64,000 nucleotides of DNA, taken from contig NC_091282.1 in assembly GCF_032444005.1 (NCBI RefSeq), positions 1,129,516,001 to 1,129,580,000 of the forward strand, in the 5' to 3' direction. Shown here piece after piece: positions 21,596-57,100 of the stretch. Numbering within the stretch: position 1 is the stretch's first letter; the number at the start of each line of letters is the position of its first letter. The notes beneath the pieces were generated by a model that was given only the letters and a program-made list of their open reading frames with translations, had not been told where the DNA came from and made no database searches. The position numbers and the translations under genes were made by a program. The DNA is from Ranitomeya imitator. Its lineage: Eukaryota.

Positions 21596-23140
21596 CAGTG
21601 GGGAGAATAAATATTTGATACGCTGAATATTTTACACGTTTTTCCACCTACAAAGGATGGAGAGGTCTGTAATTTTTATCGTAGGTACACTTCACCTGTG
21701 AGAGACAGAATCTAAAAGTAAAAATAAAGAAAATCACATTGTATGATTTTGAAATAATTAAATTGCATTTTATTGCATGAAATAAGCATTTGATCACCTG
21801 CCAGCTAGCAATAATTCTGGTTCTCACAGACCTGTTACATTTTCGTTAAGAAGCCCTCCTCCTCTGCACTCATTACCTTTATTAATTGTACCTGTTTGGA
21901 CTTGTTACCTGTATAAAAGACAACTGTCCACACAATCAATCACTCTCCAACTTCTCCACCATGGCCAAGACCAAAGAGCTGTCTAAGGACACCAGGTACA
22001 AAATTGTAGCCTTACAATAGGCAAGCAGCTTGGTGAGAGGGCAACAACCGTTGGTGCAATTATTAGAAAATGGAAGAAACAAAAGATGACCGTCAATCTT
22101 CCTTGGTCTGGGGCTCCATGCAAGATTTTGCCTCGTGGAGCAAGGATGATTCTGAGGAATGTCAGGAATCAGCTTAGAACTACACGGGAGGACCTGGTAA
22201 ATGACCTAAAGAGAGCTGGGACTACAAGTCTCAAACATTATCATTAGTAACACACTACGCCATCATGGATTAAAATCCTGAAGAGCACAGAAGGTCCTCC
22301 TGCTCACGCCAGCACATGCCCAGGCCCGTTTGAAGTTCACCAATTACCATCTGGATGATCCAGAGTAGGTATGGGAGAATGTCATGTGGTCAGATGAAAC
22401 AAAAAAAAAACTTTTTGGAATCAACTCCACTCCGTGCTTGGAGGAGGAATGTTTCGATGCTTCACCATCCAACAGTGAAGCATGGAGGGGAAACATACTT
22501 TGGGGGTGCTTTTCTGCAAATGAGACAGGATGACTGCATCGCATTGAAGGGAGGGTAGATGGGGTCATGTACTGTAACTCAAGATTTTGGCCAACTACCT
22601 CGTTCTCTCAGTAAGAGCATTGAAGATGGGTCATGGCTGGGTCTTCCAGCATGACAATGACCTGAAACACACTGCCAGCGCAACTAAGAAGTGACTTCAT
22701 AAGAAGCATTTGAAGGTGCTGGAGTGGCCCAGGCAGTCTCCAGACCCGAACCCATTAGAAAATCTTTGGAGGGAGCTGAAACTCAATGTTGCCCAGCAGC
22801 AGTCAAGAAAACCTAAAAGATCTGGAGAAGATCTGTATGGAAAAGCGGGCCAAAATCCCTGCTGCAGGGTGTGCAAACTTGGTCAAAAAACTACATGAAA
22901 CGTCTGACCTCTATAATTGCAAACAAAGTTCTGCTTTTCTATTGTATCAAATATTTAGTTCATGCAATAAAATGCAAATTAATTATGTAAAAATCATATA
23001 ATGTGATTTTCTGGATTTTATTAAGATTCTGTCTTTACAGTTGAAGTGTTCTTGCAATAAAAATTACAGACCTCTTTATTCTTTGTAGGTGGAATAACTT
23101 GCTAAATCAGCAGTGTATCAAATACTTATTTTCCCCATTG
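21596..23140 (+). mobile_element. Tc1-family transposon, full-length but decayed
   Basis: Imperfect TIRs CAGTGGGGAGAATAAATATTTGATAC / GTATCAAATACTTATTTTCCCCATTG; TA on the left, CA on the right (mutated TSD); subterminal inverted match continues inward. Confidence 0.9.
21961..22958 (+). pseudogene. DD34E Tc1 transposase pseudogene
   Basis: Starts [12 protein letters not shown]; motifs WSDETK, FQHDND and [11 protein letters not shown] with 34 residues between D and E; stops, frameshifts and deletions. 3' end approximate. Confidence 0.9.
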
Positions 23141-44059: not shown

Positions 44060-44336
44060 AATTAGAACAGCATCATATTACCAAACTTGTGGTGCAAAGC
44101 TTTCCAAACCAATATTCAAATGGTTCCAATAATATAAGAAAAAAAGGAAAACAGCACACAAAAAAAAAATAGAAAAAAGTGGGCTTTAATGCCTGGACGG
44201 CGTGGCAACGTTTCGGATTTCCAATCCTTTTTCAAGCAGCTGCTTGAAAAAGGATTGGAAATCCGAAACGTTGCCACGCCGTCCAGGCATTAAAGCCCAC
44301 TTTTTTCTATTTTTTTGTGTGCTGTTTTCCTTTTTT

Positions 44337-44342: not shown

Positions 44343-44375
<33 letters not shown>

Positions 44376-44376
<1 letters not shown>

Positions 44377-44725
44377 TAGATTGTGGCCCGATTCTAACGC
44401 ATCGGGTATTCTAGAATATGCATGTCCCTGTAATATATGGACAATGATGATTCCAGAATTCGCGGCAGACTGTGCCCGTCGCTGATTGGTCAAGGCAACC
44501 TTTATGACGTCATTGTCGCCATGGCAACCATTATGATATCTACGTCGATACTGTGCCCGTCGCTGAATCAGAAACGTGAGATGTCTACGTCCTTTATGAC
44601 ATCATCGTCGCTGTGCCCGTTGCTGATTGGTCGAGGCCTGGCGGCCTCGACCAATCAGAGACGCGGGATTTCTACGTCGATGCTGTGCCTGACGGCCTCG
44701 ACCAATCAGAGAGCCGGGATTTCCA

Positions 44726-44757
<32 letters not shown>

Positions 44758-44788
44758 GGAAAAACCCTTAGACAATTATATATATAGA
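44376..44788 (-). mobile_element. Non-autonomous Helitron
   Basis: Minus strand A|TC start (44788), subterminal hairpin CCCGAT..ATCGGG and CTAG|T end (44376-44379); inserted in (TA)n; internal (GACA)n and CCAAT-containing hairpins. Confidence 0.8.
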
Positions 44789-45751: not shown

Positions 45752-45904
45752 TTGTCGTCTAGCCTCGCCGCTTTTCTTTGTATCTTTGTACAGCACCCCC
45801 GGTCGTGAAGATGTTTTTTACCTTGCGTTAATAAAGTTACCCGCACCGGATTTCCAGCGAGTGCGCTCCATTCCTTCTTTGTTTCTCTGGTATATATATA
45901 TATA

Positions 45905-46295
45905 CTAGATTGTGGCCCGATTCTAACGCATCGGGTATTCTAGAATATGCATGTCCCCGTAGTATATGGACAATGATGATTCCAGAATTCGCGGCAGACT
46001 GTGCCCGTCGCTGATTGGTCGAGGCAACCTTTATGACATCATCGTCGCCATGGCAACCATTATGACATCTACATCGATACTGTGCCCGTTGCTGATTGGT
46101 CGAGGCCTGGCGGCCTCGACCAATCAGAGACGCAGGATGTCTACGTCCTTTATGACATCATCGTCGCTGTGCCCGTCGCTGATTGGTCGAGGCCTGGCGG
46201 CCTCGACCAATCAGAGACGCGGGATTTCCAGGACAGACAGACAGACAGACAGACAGACGGAAAAACCCTTAGACAATTATATATATATATATATA
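45905..46295 (-). mobile_element. Second copy of the same Helitron family
   Basis: Same 3' end (CTAGATTGTGGCCCGATTCTAACGCATCGGG on plus); 5' TC end merges into (TA)n, so the right boundary is approximate. Confidence 0.8.
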
Positions 46296-48924: not shown

Positions 48925-50576
48925 AAGGGTTGGCCAATAAAAACAAATTATTAAACAGTTACTATAATCTATCTGCATCTGCTGATTGGCGAGTGTCCCA
49001 CCTCTGGTACCCGCACCGATAAGTAGATGAGGGAACTTTAAGCCCCACTTAGAAATGAAGCAGCAGGTCCCCCGACTTGAGTTCCATTCATACCCTATGG
49101 GCAGGAGCGTGCAGTCCATAGCTGCAAACCTTGCTATGCCATGTGCCCCATAAGCTAGGGGGGCCAGTGCCGCTCAGCAACTGGGCCTTCCTTCCCATCC
49201 ATCATCAAAATTTCACCTGTGTCCACATCTACAGGAGGAGGGCGCCATTGAGTAGAATGATAGATCAGGGCGCCAAAGACTAAGTGATCCACCTTTCATT
49301 CAGAGCCTGTGAGTCTGAAAGTCCATGCACTCGAGGTGCAACAACATCACTCCATCTCAATTACAGTGCGGATTAGTGTTTTTGTTTTAAATGTCAGCAG
49401 CTATAGGGACCCTCACACTGAGTGGAGAGCTGTGGGGATTTCATATTGAGGGGAATTGAGAAGATCCTTACACTGAACTTGGGGTTGTGGAACCATCATA
49501 ATGAATGGGAGACTGTCACCACAGTGGGAGCTTATGGGGCTATCATACTGAGTGGGGGACTGTGGGAACATCATACTGAGTGGGGGACTGTGGGAACATC
49601 ATACTGAGTGGGGGACTGTAGGAACATCATACTGAGTGGGGGACTGTGGGAACATCATACTGAGTGGTGGCTGTGGGGTGAGTCATAATCAGAGGGGACT
49701 TTGGGGTGAATCATACTGAGTGAGGGTCTGTGGAGGGCATCATACTGAGCAGAGGACTACTGTAAGTGGGCAATCTCACTTAGTAAGGGACTGTGGGAGC
49801 ATCAGACCAAGGGGCAATCATACTGTGCAATGGCTGTGAGGGCCATAATACTGAGGGGTGGGCTGTGGGATATCATACTGAGGACTGGGGGAGTGATCAA
49901 ACTGAGGGCTGTGTGGGGATCATACTGAATGGGGGCCATCATATTGAATAGGGGATGTGGGAGCATCATACTGAGGGGCTGTGGGGGCATCATATTAAAG
50001 GGCCATCATACTGTATGGGGACTGTGGAGTGTCTGATATGGTTGTGGGGCATCATACTGACAAGCCATCACACTGTGTGGGGGCCATGATACTATGCGTG
50101 CTTTAGAGCCATCATGCTGTGGAGGTATTATATTGTGTTGGGGACACTGTGGGGACATCATACTTTGCTGGAGGCACAGTGGATTCATCATATTTATGTG
50201 TGAGTGGGCAGTGGAGTGAAATGGGGAGGAATTCACTGTCGGGATATCATACACTTTATGGGTGGGGGGCATTTTGGGAGCATCAAACTCAAGGAAGGAG
50301 ATATGACCCCATCTACTTTGCCAAATATTTGTTTTGGGGATGAGGGGGCGCCACTGCCTATGGGTCTGCCATTAAAAAAAAATAGAGCAGCACCCGATAG
50401 CCTTATGAGGATTGAATGGAGCAGTGCACTGCCGCTCCATTCTAATGTGGATAAAAGTTTCCCGTTCTGCCCATGTGGGTAGTTCACAGCAGTTGCCACC
50501 CCTACCCCTTCACTGATGAACAAGTTATAAGTTTTCCTGTGGGTAATTGATAACTTGTTTTCACTGAGCAACCCCT
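48925..50576. mobile_element. T2-type MITE split by a hAT insertion
   Basis: TTAA at 48921-48924 and 50577-50580; termini AAGGGTTG.. / ..CAACCCCT. Confidence 0.6.
49102..50356. mobile_element. hAT-type MITE carrying a 28-bp minisatellite (CATCATACTGAGTGGGGGACTGTGGGAA)
   Basis: Exact 8-bp TSD CCTATGGG (49094-49101, 50357-50364); weak CAG..CTG termini; array clearest at 49535-49670. Confidence 0.7.
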
Positions 50577-50627
50577 TTAAAGGAAATCTGTTGTCAGGTT
50601 TTTGCCACTTAATCTGAAAGTAGCATA

Positions 50628-52240
50628 CAGGTCCTTCTCAAAAAATTAGCATATAGTGTTAAATTTCATTATTTACCATAATGTAATGATTACAATTAAA
50701 CTTTCATATATTATAGATTCATTATCCACCAACTGAAATTTGTCAGGTCTTTTATTGTTTTAATACTGATGATTTTGGCATACAACTCCTGATAACCCAA
50801 AAAACCTGTCTCAATAAATTAGCATATTTCACCCATCCAATCAAATAAAAGTGTTTTTTTAATAACAAACAAAAAAACCATCAAATAATAATGTTCAGTT
50901 ATGCACTCAATACTTGGTCGGGAATCCTTTTGCAGAAATGACTGCTTCAATGCGGCGTGGCATGGAGGCAATCAGCCTGTGACACTGCTGAGATGTTATG
51001 GAGGCCCAGGATGCTTCAATAGCGGCCTTAAGCTCATCCAGAGTGTTGGGTCTTGCGTCTCTCAACTTTCTCTTCACAATATCCCACAGATTCTCTATGG
51101 GGTTCAGGTCAGGAGAGTTGGCAGGCCAATTGAGCACAGTAATACCATGGTCAGTAAACCATTTACCAGTGGTTTTGGCACTGTGAGCAGGTGCCAGGTC
51201 GTGCTGAAAAATGAAATCTTCATCTCCATAAAGCATTTCAGCCGATGGAAGCATGAAGTGCTCCAAAATCTCCTGATAGCTAGCTGCATTGACCCTGCCC
51301 TTGATGAAACACAGTGGACCAACACCAGCAGCTGACATGGCACCCCACACCATCACTGACTGTGGGTACTTGACACTGGACTTCAGGCATTTTGGCATTT
51401 CCTTCTCAGCAGTCTTCCTCCAGACTCTGGCACCTTGATTTCCGAATGACATGCAAAATTTGCTTTCATCAGAAAAAAGTACTTGGGACCACTTAGCAAC
51501 AGTCCAGTGCTGCTTCTCTGTAGCCCAGGTCAGGCTCCTCTGCCGCTGTTTATGGTTCAAAAGTGGCTTTACCTGGGGAATGCGGCACCTGTAGCCCATT
51601 TCCTGCACACGCCTGTGCACGGTGGCTCTGGATGTTTCCACACCAGACTCAGTCCACTGCTTCCTCAGGTTCCCCAAGGTCTGGAATCGGTCCTTCTCCA
51701 CAATCTTCCTCAGGGTCCGGTCTCCTCTTCTCGTTGTACAGCGTTTTCTGCCACATTGTTTCCTTCCAACAGACTTACCATTGAGGTGCCTTGATACAGC
51801 ACTCTGGGAACAGCCTATTTGTTGAGAAATTTCTTTCTGGGTCTTACCCTCTTGCTTGAGGGTGTCAATGATGGCCTTCTTGACATCTGTCAGGTCGCTA
51901 GTCTTACCCATGATGGGGGTTTTGAGTAATGAACCAGGCAGGGAGTTTATAAAAGCCTCAGGTATCTTTTGCATGTGTTTAGAGTTAATTAGTTGATTCA
52001 GAAGATTAGGGTAATAGGTCATTTAGAGAACCTTTTCTTGATATGCTAATTTATTGAGACAGGTTTTTTGGGTTATCAGGAGTTGTATGCCAAAATCATC
52101 AGTATTAAAACAATAAAAGACCTGACAAATTTCAGTTGGTGGATAATGAATCTATAATATATGAAAGTTTAATTGTAATCATTACATTATGGTAAATAAT
52201 GAAATTTAACACTATATGCTAATTTTTTGAGAAGGACCTG
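50628..52240 (-). mobile_element. Apparently intact Tc1 (DD34E, IR/DR-type) transposon, 1613 bp
   Basis: TA TSD (50626-50627, 52241-52242). 200-bp TIRs (50628-50827, 52041-52240) with no mismatch found by eye; AAATTAGCATAT repeated at the outer and inner ends of each TIR; uninterrupted transposase ORF. Confidence 0.97.
50907..51911 (-). CDS. Tc1 transposase, 334 aa
   Basis: MGKTSDLTDVKK start; paired-like HTH and GRK/NLS-like region (CGRKRCTTRR); catalytic VLFSDESKF, FQHDLAPAH, SPDLNPIENLW with exactly 34 residues between D and E; ends KGFPTKY*. Confidence 0.95.
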   Translation of the reverse strand: MGKTSDLTDVKKAIIDTLKQEGKTQKEISQQIGCSQSAVSRHLNGKSVGRKQCGRKRCTTRRGDRTLRKIVEKDRFQTLGNLRKQWTESGVETSRATVHRRVQEMGYRCRIPQVKPLLNHKQRQRSLTWATEKQHWTVAKWSQVLFSDESKFCMSFGNQGARVWRKTAEKEMPKCLKSSVKYPQSVMVWGAMSAAGVGPLCFIKGRVNAASYQEILEHFMLPSAEMLYGDEDFIFQHDLAPAHSAKTTGKWFTDHGITVLNWPANSPDLNPIENLWDIVKRKLRDARPNTLDELKAAIEASWASITSQQCHRLIASMPRRIEAVISAKGFPTKY

Positions 52241-53433
52241 TAATATGAGACAGAGAGCCTGATTCCAATGATGTGTCATTTAATTATTTGCTTGCTGTAG
52301 TTCTGATAAAAATCATTGTTTTATCAGTAGGAGATTATCACTAGAGGACTAGTAAACCTGCTGTCATGTTGTCATCCATATTCATGAACTCTGTCTAAGT
52401 CTGCCCCCACCACAATTTTCTGCCTATGCACAGTATACACAGAAAGCTGTCAATCAGTGGGGTGGGCAGAGTTCGGCCTTCAGAGAACTGCTATGTCTGC
52501 AGTAGTAAAAACACTGATTTTATCAAAACTGCAGCAAGCAGCACAGTGATACATCAGTGGAATCAAGATCTCTGCCCCTACATTATTCTGCACTCAGAAG
52601 TGGTAGCAAAAACTTAGTGATAAATTCCCTTTATGTTTACCAGGTGTGGGAATAAGTTATTGCAGTATTCAGCACAATTTGTTATGTGCTACCTAGACCC
52701 CTGGGTAATTGATCCTAGAAACAAAATGCTGACTTGATTGCACTGCTTGTAAAGCCTGAGTTCAGTAAGACTGCACTGATTAAGCTAATTTCAGTTCTTT
52801 ATGTGCATTGACTTGTAACCTTTTTGGTTTCATGTATCAGATGATTTAATGTCCTTTCTGTATAAGTAGATTCCAGACCCAGTTTACTGTGCTCTCATAA
52901 AATAAATGAGCGACCATAATACAAGCCCCTGTAGGATTTCAACACATAAAGGACAAGACTTCTACATAAATTTTATTATTTACTGTCAGCAGCAGAATGG
53001 GAGCTGCTCATGAAGACATGAAAGTCTTACAGTGTATTAGTTAAGATGCTACATATGAAAATTGTCTAAAAGCAAAACCAATAACAACCAATCACCGCAC
53101 AGTTTCCATTGTTCATAAAAGATGAAAGCTGCACTGAGATTGGTTGCTATGGGCAACAGTGACAATTTTGGTTTCAGATAGTTTTCTAAAATCTCCAATG
53201 TACCAATCATATGGATTTTTTCTCATTCATGGGACCCATACCTCCCAACTTGGAAGGCCAGGAAACAGGGACCGATAAGCCACATCCTTAAACCATGCAG
53301 TTTATTTTTGTGCGACCATACAAAAATAGTGCCGTTAATGAAGCCCCATAGTGTTTCATACTGTTCATTGTTCCTTTTATGGCCTCCACAAAGTTTAATG
53401 CCGTAGAGATGCTCCCACGTAGACTGATGGTAC

Positions 53434-55593: not shown

Positions 55594-57100
55594 AGGTACT
55601 GTCACACTAGACGATATCGCTAGCGATCCGTGACGTTGCAGCGTCCTCGCTAGCGATATCGTCCAGTGTGACAGGCAGCAGCGATCAGGCCCCTGCTGGG
55701 AGATCGCTGGTCGGGGAAGAAAGTCCAGAACTTTATTTCGTCGCTGGACTCCCCGTAGACATCGCTGAATCGGCGTGTGTGACACCGATTCAGCGATGTC
55801 TTTGCTGGTAACTAGTGTTGAGCATTCCGATACCGCAAGTATCGGGTATCGGCCGATACTTGCGGTATCGGAATTCCGATGCCGAGATCCGATATTTTTG
55901 TGATATCGGGTATCGGTATCGGAAGTGTAAAATAAAGAATTAAAATAAAAAATATTGTTATATTCACCTCTCCGGCGGCCCCTGGACATCAGCGGGAGGA
56001 TCCGGCGTCCGGCACGGCTTCTTTCTTCAAAATGCGCGCCTTCAGGACCTGTGGAATGACGTCCCGGCTTCTGATTGGTCGCGTGCCGCCCATGTGACCG
56101 CCACGCGACCAATCAGAAGCCGCGACGTCATTCCTCAGCTAAAGTCCTAGAATGAGCGCCTTCTAGGACCTGAGGAATGACGTCGCGGCTTCTGATTGGT
56201 CGCGTGGCGGTCACATGGGCGGCACGCGACCAATCAGAAGCCGGGACGTCATTCCACAGGTCCTGAAGGCGCGCATTTTGAAGAAAGAAGCCGTGCCGGA
56301 CGCCGGATCCTCCCGCTGATGTCCAGGGGCCGCCGGAGAGGTGAATATAACAATATTTTTTATTTTAATTCTTTATTTTACACTTTAATATGGATCCCAG
56401 GGCCTGAAGGAGAGTTTCCTCTCCTTCAGACCCTGGGATCCATGAGGATACATTCCGATACTTGATGTCCCATTGACTTGTATTGGTATCGGATATCGGT
56501 ATCGGCGATATCCGATATTTTTCGGGTATCGGCCGATACTATCCGATACCGATACTTTCAAGTATCGGACGGTATCGCTCAACACTACTGGTAACCAGGG
56601 TAAACATCGGGTAACTAAGCGCAGGGCCGCGCTTAGTAACCCGATGTTTACCCTGGTTACCATCCTAAGAGTAAAAAAACAAACAGTACATACTTACCTA
56701 CAGCCGTCTGTCCTCCAGCGCTGTGCTCTGCTCTCCTCCTGCTCTGGCTGTGAGCGTCGGTCAGCCGGAAAGCAGAGCGGTGATGTCACCGCTCTGCTTT
56801 CTGGCTGCCTGGAGCTCACAGCCAGACCAGAGAAGCAGAGCGCCGAGGACAGACAGCGGTAGGTAAGTATGTAGCGTTTGTTTTTTTACTTTTTAGGATG
56901 GTAACCAGGGTAAACATCGGGTTACTAAGCGCGGCCCTGCGCTTAGTTACCCGATGTTTACCCTGGTTACCGGGGACCTCGGGATCGTTGGTCGCTGGAG
57001 AGCTGTCTGTGTGACAGCTCTCCAGCGACCAAACAGCGACGCTGCAGCGATCCGGATCGTTGTCGGTATCGCTGCAGCGTCGCTATGTGTGACGGTACCT
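55594..57100. mobile_element. Harbinger-type palindromic MITE hosting a hAT MITE
   Basis: TAA TSD (55591-55593, 57101-57103); TIR AGGTACTGTCACAC / GTGTGACGGTACCT; internal palindrome ~56596-56975. Confidence 0.85.
55813..56587. mobile_element. hAT-type MITE with a ~460-bp internal palindrome (family of 24042-24712, opposite orientation)
   Basis: TIR TAGTGTTGAGC; exact 8-bp TSD CTGGTAAC (55805-55812, 56588-56595). Confidence 0.9.

Follow-up and report, generated by a model that had tools for sequence, protein, structure and literature searches.

We analyzed a 64,000-nucleotide stretch of the genome of the poison frog Ranitomeya imitator (contig NC_091282.1 of assembly GCF_032444005.1), hereafter the window, in which a Tc1 transposon interrupts a repeat resembling a miniature inverted-repeat transposable element (MITE). 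The Tc1 element proper spans 50628-52240 (1613 bp; positions are counted from the first letter of the window), reads CAGGTCC...GGACCTG from end to end, and has a TA on either side (50626-52242). A repeat finder recovered two arms of 202 nt each, 50626-50827 and 52041-52242, that were 100% complementary and consist of the TA and a 200-nt inverted repeat. An initial annotation, made by a model from the sequence alone, had described perfect 200-bp terminal repeats, and this description held. The inverted repeats match at 200 of 200 positions and begin with CAG, as required for Tc1/mariner ends.

All parts of the element are read from the minus strand. In that direction, the 5' inverted repeat (52041-52240, 200 nt) is followed by a 5' untranslated stretch (51912-52040) in which two upstream ATGs, at 52022-52020 and 51974-51972, lie in frame, the transposase gene of 334 codons and a stop (50907-51911), a 3' untranslated stretch (50828-50906), and the 3' inverted repeat (50628-50827, 200 nt). 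Within each inverted repeat, we observed a 19-nt motif twice, 173 nt apart (50636-50654 and 50809-50827 in the left repeat, 95% identical), with the outer-end version reading TCTCAAAAAATTAGCATAT and the inner-end version reading TCTCAATAAATTAGCATAT. The mirrored direct repeats of the right inverted repeat lie at 52214-52232 (outer) and 52041-52059 (inner). Judged by sequence, this combination of long inverted repeats with outer and inner direct repeats is the inverted repeat/direct repeat (IR/DR) layout of Sleeping Beauty (SB)-type Tc1 elements.

An open frame runs along the minus strand from 52022 to 50910, with a stop at 50909-50907, and encodes a predicted protein of 334 amino acids (51911-50910) that begins MGKTSDLT, ends FPTKY, and carries a GRKR motif and a KPLL linker. 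Two Pfam domains scored above cut-off, the helix-turn-helix (HTH) domain HTH_Tnp_Tc3_2 (PF01498; residues 64-133, E value of 1.3e-12) and DDE_3 (PF13358; residues 143-295, E value of 1e-17). The catalytic half aligned without large gaps to the crystallized catalytic domain of the SB100X transposase (5CR4; E value of 5.9e-44), which placed D148, D238, and E273 opposite SB D153, D244, and E279. Counted on the translation, the spacing of D238 and E273 is 34 residues (DD34E). These results bear out the open 334-residue DD34E reading frame with DNA-binding and catalytic regions that had been annotated initially. An AlphaFold2 model of the transposase from 40 aligned sequences had low confidence (mean predicted local distance difference test score of 58, with the catalytic core below 50), and residues 126 and 168, discussed below, were positioned via sequence alignment to SB100X and not via the model. 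The exact protein sequence was not found among about 15 billion public proteins, and a full-text literature search gave no match for the terminal sequence or the N-terminal peptides of the element. With its TA duplication, a transposase of HTH and DDE domains, and CAG ends, the element classifies by sequence as Tc1 (DD34E) of the Tc1/mariner superfamily.

The site of insertion could be reconstructed from the surrounding repeat. Public sequencing runs, designated X1, X7, and so on, were examined as contigs, and contig depth was not taken as copy number. Excising the Tc1 with one TA joins 50627 to 52243 and restores the left arm of a palindromic, MITE-like repeat (50550-52660; about 495 bp without the Tc1). 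The restored arm (50550-50627 plus 52243-52322) was 81% identical to the reverse complement of 52508-52660 over 143 aligned nucleotides, and the alignment crosses the insertion point unbroken. Because the other MITE arm carries a single TA at the matching place, as does a paralogous contig of run X16 (...AGCATAAC...), the TA duplication (left copy at 50626-50627, right copy at 52241-52242, both from the same repeat-finder result) is real and intact, as initially proposed. On this alignment, the Tc1 inserted at a TA within one arm of an older MITE-like element. The initial description of the Tc1 as the innermost layer of a nest thus stands for the Tc1-in-MITE layer and for that layer only. Contig depth over the right part of the MITE-like repeat is high in runs X1 and X16, and many internal-deletion variants of the palindromic repeat (50550-50627 plus 52243-52660) were present in contigs of the same two runs.

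Divergence of the window copy from the family master

A near-identical element was present in 18 public runs from eight studies (P1-P8), comprising two coded organisms and two unlabelled runs. These runs contain about 0.60 of the sampled words of the element plus its flanks, the share expected of the element alone after subtraction of words from the flanks and from private variants; therefore, no run holds the flanks of this locus. The best protein match to the window transposase was an annotated R. imitator protein, P0001, which was 99% identical over its transposase part and whose gene model fuses the transposase to a hydrolase-like tail. We also observed that in three R. imitator gene models, P0001, P0015, and P0030, the transposase is fused to a host-like tail; the tails comprise a hydrolase-like domain, an EF-hand/S100 domain, and a longer unnamed protein. 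These models are probably annotation chimeras that arose from intronic Tc1 copies.

Runs X1, X7, and X16 yielded mutually consistent dominant contigs that cover the whole internal part of the element, with X7 and X16 each spanning the interior in one contig of 1225-1272 nt. We took these dominant contigs as the family master and read differences from the comparison tables without building a consensus sequence. The window copy departs from the master at 50931, 51408-51409, 51536, and 52021 and has one extra T in the T run near 50854, a 1-nt indel in the 3' untranslated stretch. The difference at 50931 (GCA in the window, GCC in the dominant contigs) is synonymous at Ala327, and the window letter accounts for about a fifth of the X1 depth; 50931 is a subfamily marker and not a post-insertion change. 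Codon 126 (51534-51536) reads AGC in the window and CGC in the dominant contigs, giving Arg126Ser from the single change at 51536. Codon 168 (51408-51410) reads GCT against GGG, giving Gly168Ala. The latter is a tandem two-base substitution on the coding strand (GGG to GCT), which suggests a single multi-nucleotide event or, with lower probability, an assembly error. At 52021, the window has ATG where the dominant contigs have ACG, creating a private in-frame start 37 codons upstream of MGKT. The other in-frame ATG, at 51974 and 21 codons upstream of MGKT, is the consensus of the frog lineage and is CTG in a fish-type lineage described below.

By its sequence, then, the window copy is not the family master, having acquired two replacements at conserved positions, one synonymous change, an upstream ATG, and a 1-nt indel. 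These roughly five events in 1613 bp amount to about 0.3% divergence from the master. If neutral sites change at 0.8-3 x 10^-9 per site per year, as assumed here, this divergence suggests an age of about 1-4 million years, or a younger age if more of the differences came from the source copy. At this divergence, two perfect arms are unremarkable because 1.2 to 1.6 differences are expected per 400 nt (a probability of about 0.2 to 0.3 of seeing none). The element is young, in line with the initial view, and the accompanying claim of very recent or ongoing activity is not shown for a copy that stands about 0.3% from its master and may be roughly 1-4 million years old.

We consider it unlikely that the window copy is itself autonomous and currently active, with a functional 334-residue protein and an insertion recent enough to be polymorphic. 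Its open frame, catalytic triad, matching inverted repeats, and intact TA duplication favor autonomy, both replacements are conservative in size, and the family is plentiful in reads, where it shows little divergence. These features of an autonomous copy are present; a protein equal to that of the functional master is not, and P0001, unlike the window copy, has both Arg126 and Gly168. Of 39 relatives, 32 have Arg at position 126, which aligns with SB R131, and 38 have Gly at position 168, which aligns with SB G173. The clamp-loop strands of SB lie at residues 169-171 and 174-176 (PMC4820933), which would put Gly168 at the turn of the clamp-loop hairpin that contacts the linker of the partner subunit (PMC4820933). 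Further arguing against autonomy, the private upstream ATG could add 37 residues before the DNA-binding domain, the gene differs from the master by two replacement codons and a single synonymous change, as expected of neutral decay, and the distance from the master suggests an age of at least a million years. Moreover, neither an empty allele nor an exact empty-site joint for this insertion was seen among the contigs of the public runs, none of which carries the locus flanks. The initial annotation had named inactivating substitutions relative to a family consensus as the observation that would speak against activity. Arg126Ser, Gly168Ala, and the private ATG are candidate changes of this kind and go part of the way toward that observation.

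Relatives of the transposase and horizontal transfer

Outside R. imitator, identity to the window transposase was 94% for Labeo rohita, 92.5% for Gadus morhua, 92% for Xenopus tropicalis, 89-91% for Polypterus senegalus, and 88-90% for Cyprinus carpio and Leuciscus, in agreement with the initially noted resemblance to Tc1 elements of teleost fish. Clusters of the nearest matches at 90% identity include G. morhua, Nothobranchius furzeri, Cirrhinus mrigala, and Leuciscus. A Phyllobates terribilis protein annotated as nucleoplasmin-2 (P0137) also fell in a 90% cluster and was rejected as a relative, as it gave no transposase alignment and was 24% identical.

Three metagenome contigs (L001-L003) contain whole fish-type elements with the same termini and a flanking TA in AT-rich DNA. 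They were 89-91% identical to the window element over the full length, inverted repeats included. Since the protein of L002 matches one from C. carpio at 97.8% identity, we took these contigs as cyprinid-type copies. Divergence from the window copy was 10-11% in the inverted repeats, 2-7% in the gene, and 8.5-16% in the untranslated parts of the two better-aligned copies, rising to 27.5% in the 3' part of L001. In codon alignments, synonymous divergence (dS) from the window copy was 0.102 for L001 and 0.084 for L002, values that rest on metagenome contigs of inferred origin and are set against a host baseline from established knowledge, not a computed one. The ratio of nonsynonymous to synonymous divergence (omega) was about 0.35 for these comparisons and 1.35 between two fish-type copies, a pattern typical of transposons that are under selection while their lineages are active and decay neutrally once inserted.

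Along the element, divergence from L001-L003 falls from 10-11% at the inverted repeats to 6-7% and 2-3% across the first and second halves of the gene, respectively, with 0 differences over the 100 nt at element positions 1101-1200. A mosaic or recombinant origin was considered on the basis of dS (0.12-0.15 in the first half, 0.05-0.06 in the second) and dropped, the contrast not being significant (Fisher P value of 0.07-0.13).

In a maximum-likelihood tree, the window transposase and P0001 fell in a clade with 100/100 support together with Labeo, Cyprinus, Nothobranchius, Polypterus, and X. tropicalis sequences. The clade is nearly a star, with branches of at most 0.06, and within it Xenopus joins Polypterus and Labeo rather than Ranitomeya, incongruent with host relationships. 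The Ranitomeya copies have 13-14 residue states of their own; thus, the frog lineage appears to have left the fish/Xenopus cluster before multiplying. A dS of 0.09 and rates of 1-4 x 10^-9 would place the split between the frog and fish-type lineages at roughly 10-45 million years ago.

Frogs and teleosts diverged more than 400 million years ago, and neutral sites should be saturated between them. The split has been quoted as 480 million years (PMC6278860). With dS at 0.084-0.102 against a host split of this depth, vertical descent is disfavored. Strongly conserved vertical inheritance, in place of horizontal transfer, is in our judgment a highly improbable source of the likeness to fish elements: the omega of 0.35 between lineages indicates a transposase under selection, as this explanation would have it, yet synonymous and noncoding sites are likewise only 8-11% diverged, and X. 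tropicalis copies are nearer to bichir and cyprinid copies than to Ranitomeya copies. The comparisons of unsaturated dS and the incongruent tree support horizontal transfer of the family, which the initial annotation had regarded as worth testing. A scan of viral contigs found no relative of the element, and thus nothing points to a viral vector.

It is scarcely credible that the element is a fish or other foreign contaminant in the assembly or that its perfect repeats are an assembly artefact, for although near-identical relatives occur in metagenome and metatranscriptome data, the window copy has the Ranitomeya-lineage residue states common to annotated R. imitator proteins, the element lies within a repeat that is high-copy in runs of the same organisms, frog-type sequence recurs across the 18 runs and eight studies, and the inverted repeat is identical to an independent 202-nt contig of run X7.

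Two polyA metatranscriptome runs, X19 and X20, contained contigs of the fish-type lineage (Glu30, Gln140, and Lys226) at about 91-98% identity, with the same ends as the window element and with flanks of their own at exactly 50625 and 52242. The fish-type lineage therefore occurs in polyA RNA libraries of another organism, which does not imply transcription. In a further metagenome contig (L007), positions 1-235 hold a 213-bp piece of the transposon, 96% identical and at the end of the contig; the rest carries a 327-residue open frame on the other strand that by eye resembles a bacterial transcriptional regulator. This contig is possibly a chimeric assembly.

Other repeats in the window

No second copy of the young Tc1 family was found within the 64-kb window. 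A tblastn search of the window detected a second Tc1-like stretch at 22372-22781 that was 31-39% identical to the young transposase and consisted of two matching segments in different frames (counted from their start coordinates), indicating a frameshift. The low identity and the frame break agree with the initial reading of a decayed Tc1 near 21596-23140 as a different, older family.

Several other repeats were observed around the element. At 49400-50300 lies an array of a unit of about 28 bp (GGGGACTGTGGGAACATCATACTGAGTG), whose core copies are 90-94% alike and decay outwards. A perfect 216-nt inverted repeat with a 31-nt spacer and smaller internal palindromes occupies 55923-56385, and a second inverted pair (90 nt, 96% complementary) lies at 56590-56971. 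A perfect 77-nt palindrome without a spacer was found in AT-rich DNA at 44163-44316; beside it, segments within about 44360-44760 are repeated about 1.5 kb downstream, within about 45890-46260, at 93-96% identity.

Known Tc1 systems and the place of the family among them

The window element shares with SB a single transposase gene, inverted repeats of about 200 bp with outer and inner direct repeats, a TA target, the DD34E triad, a KPLL linker, and a GR(K/R)R motif. The two differ in that SB has 340 residues and CAGTT termini, whereas the window element has 334 residues and CAGGT termini, and in the glycine-rich strip, which is KHGGGSIMLWG in SB and KYPQSVMVWG, without GGG, in the window element. 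SB was also reconstructed from salmonid Tc1 sequences, whereas the window element is a natural open copy. ZB (Tc1-8B_DR) and ZB-like elements likewise occur natively as young Tc1/DD34E transposons, and they resemble the window element in size (about 1.6 kb), in their inverted repeats of roughly 200 bp, and in the duplication of a TA (PMC7913693, PMC9777934). ZB is a native, highly active element (PMC7913693), and ZB and ZB-like elements have many intact copies and have often moved horizontally between ray-finned fishes and into anurans (PMC7913693, PMC9777934). ZB differs from the window element in length (1597 against 1613 bp), protein (341 against 334 residues), and termini (CAGCG against CAGGT), and ZB-like elements differ in having 340 residues and CAGTG termini. 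The window element is thus neither ZB nor ZB-like, a distinction drawn from tabulated length and termini and not from sequence identity. The published table of these families lists R. imitator with a ZB entry whose structural fields are all blank and a ZB-like entry with an open reading frame of 1032 nt (343 residues) and no inverted repeats or TA listed (PMC9777934). Neither CAGGT termini nor an entry of 1005 nt and 334 residues came up in that table, although its separators may have hidden one.

Intact copies have been reported in 105 (ZB), 183 (ZB-like), 26 (SB), and 36 (SB-like) genomes, and three anurans have more than 100 intact ZB-like copies (PMC9777934). With ZB and these hundreds of genomes, the statement in the initial annotation that intact Tc1 elements are uncommon in vertebrates is out of date (PMC7913693, PMC9777934). 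Horizontal transfer has been concluded for fish-derived Tc1/mariner families of the poison frog Oophaga pumilio (Rogers et al. 2018, PMC6278860). These families share with the present one a dendrobatid host, high copy number, low divergence, and a close match to elements of freshwater fish. They are named by RepBase match (Mariner-4_DR, Tc1-3_SSa, TZF28C, and others; PMC6278860), and the likeness drawn here is by description. Both the transfer of Tc1 elements between fishes and poison frogs (PMC6278860) and the commonness of native intact Tc1 elements are therefore already known. As context, Tc1-IS630-Pogo elements make up 6.6% in Dendrobates tinctorius (bioRxiv 10.1101/2023.11.06.565769) and about 4.4% in a repeats table for R. 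imitator from an article marked as retracted (PMC8457190). A bullfrog Tc1 transposase (P0038) was only 69% identical to the window protein and fell in another clade of our tree. Frog Prince/Txr and Passport/PPTN, Tc1-like elements of frogs and flatfish, are the textbook case of fish-frog transfer, one mentioned in PMC7913693, and we liken them to the present family by description only, as Tc1-like elements common to frogs and fishes.

Taken together, the evidence makes it quite probable that the window holds a young, structurally complete, horizontally acquired copy of a multi-copy IR/DR Tc1 family in a poison frog, one that has since drifted from its master. By analogy, the transposase would bind the outer and inner direct repeats of each 200-bp inverted repeat through its paired-like HTH domain. 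By homology with SB and Tc1, it would then pair both ends, excise the element with the D148/D238/E273 active site, and reinsert it at a TA that is duplicated in the process, here presumably by cut-and-paste into the palindromic MITE arm. The family would have entered the frog lineage horizontally, as part of a network in which cyprinids, cod, killifish, bichir, and Xenopus also take part, and the window copy would afterward have accumulated its two replacements, synonymous change, upstream ATG, and indel. Both of its ends being perfect, the window copy could probably still be mobilized in trans by transposase from master-type copies.

Several points weigh against this account. The contig-level, flank-less runs showed no transposition of the window copy, nor did they contain an excision footprint, an empty allele, or a transcript of it. 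Its estimated age varies with the neutral rate that is assumed, and among the differences counted, at least the one at 50931 predates the insertion. The hosts of L001-L003 are assigned from protein likeness rather than known, and that the transposase binds the direct repeats is argued by analogy.

We regard it as possible, though doubtful, that the family, as distinct from the window copy, is an intact, currently transposing IR/DR Tc1 in a tetrapod germline, in a clade distinct from SB, ZB, and ZB-like elements that has passed from fishes to frogs or back in the course of the past tens of millions of years. If the family is currently transposing, the P0001-type transposase with the 200-bp ends would be a new native vertebrate transposon system. 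A modest practical use is that the master-type copies are candidates for a native transposon tool, to join ZB and SB. For the annotation of R. imitator, the transposase chimeras P0001, P0015, and P0030 matter in their own right. The window copy also illustrates that an element judged flawless by eye may nonetheless depart from its master at conserved residues. More broadly, the family adds a dissected example of Tc1 exchange between fishes and frogs that was followed by expansion in the very large genomes of poison frogs.

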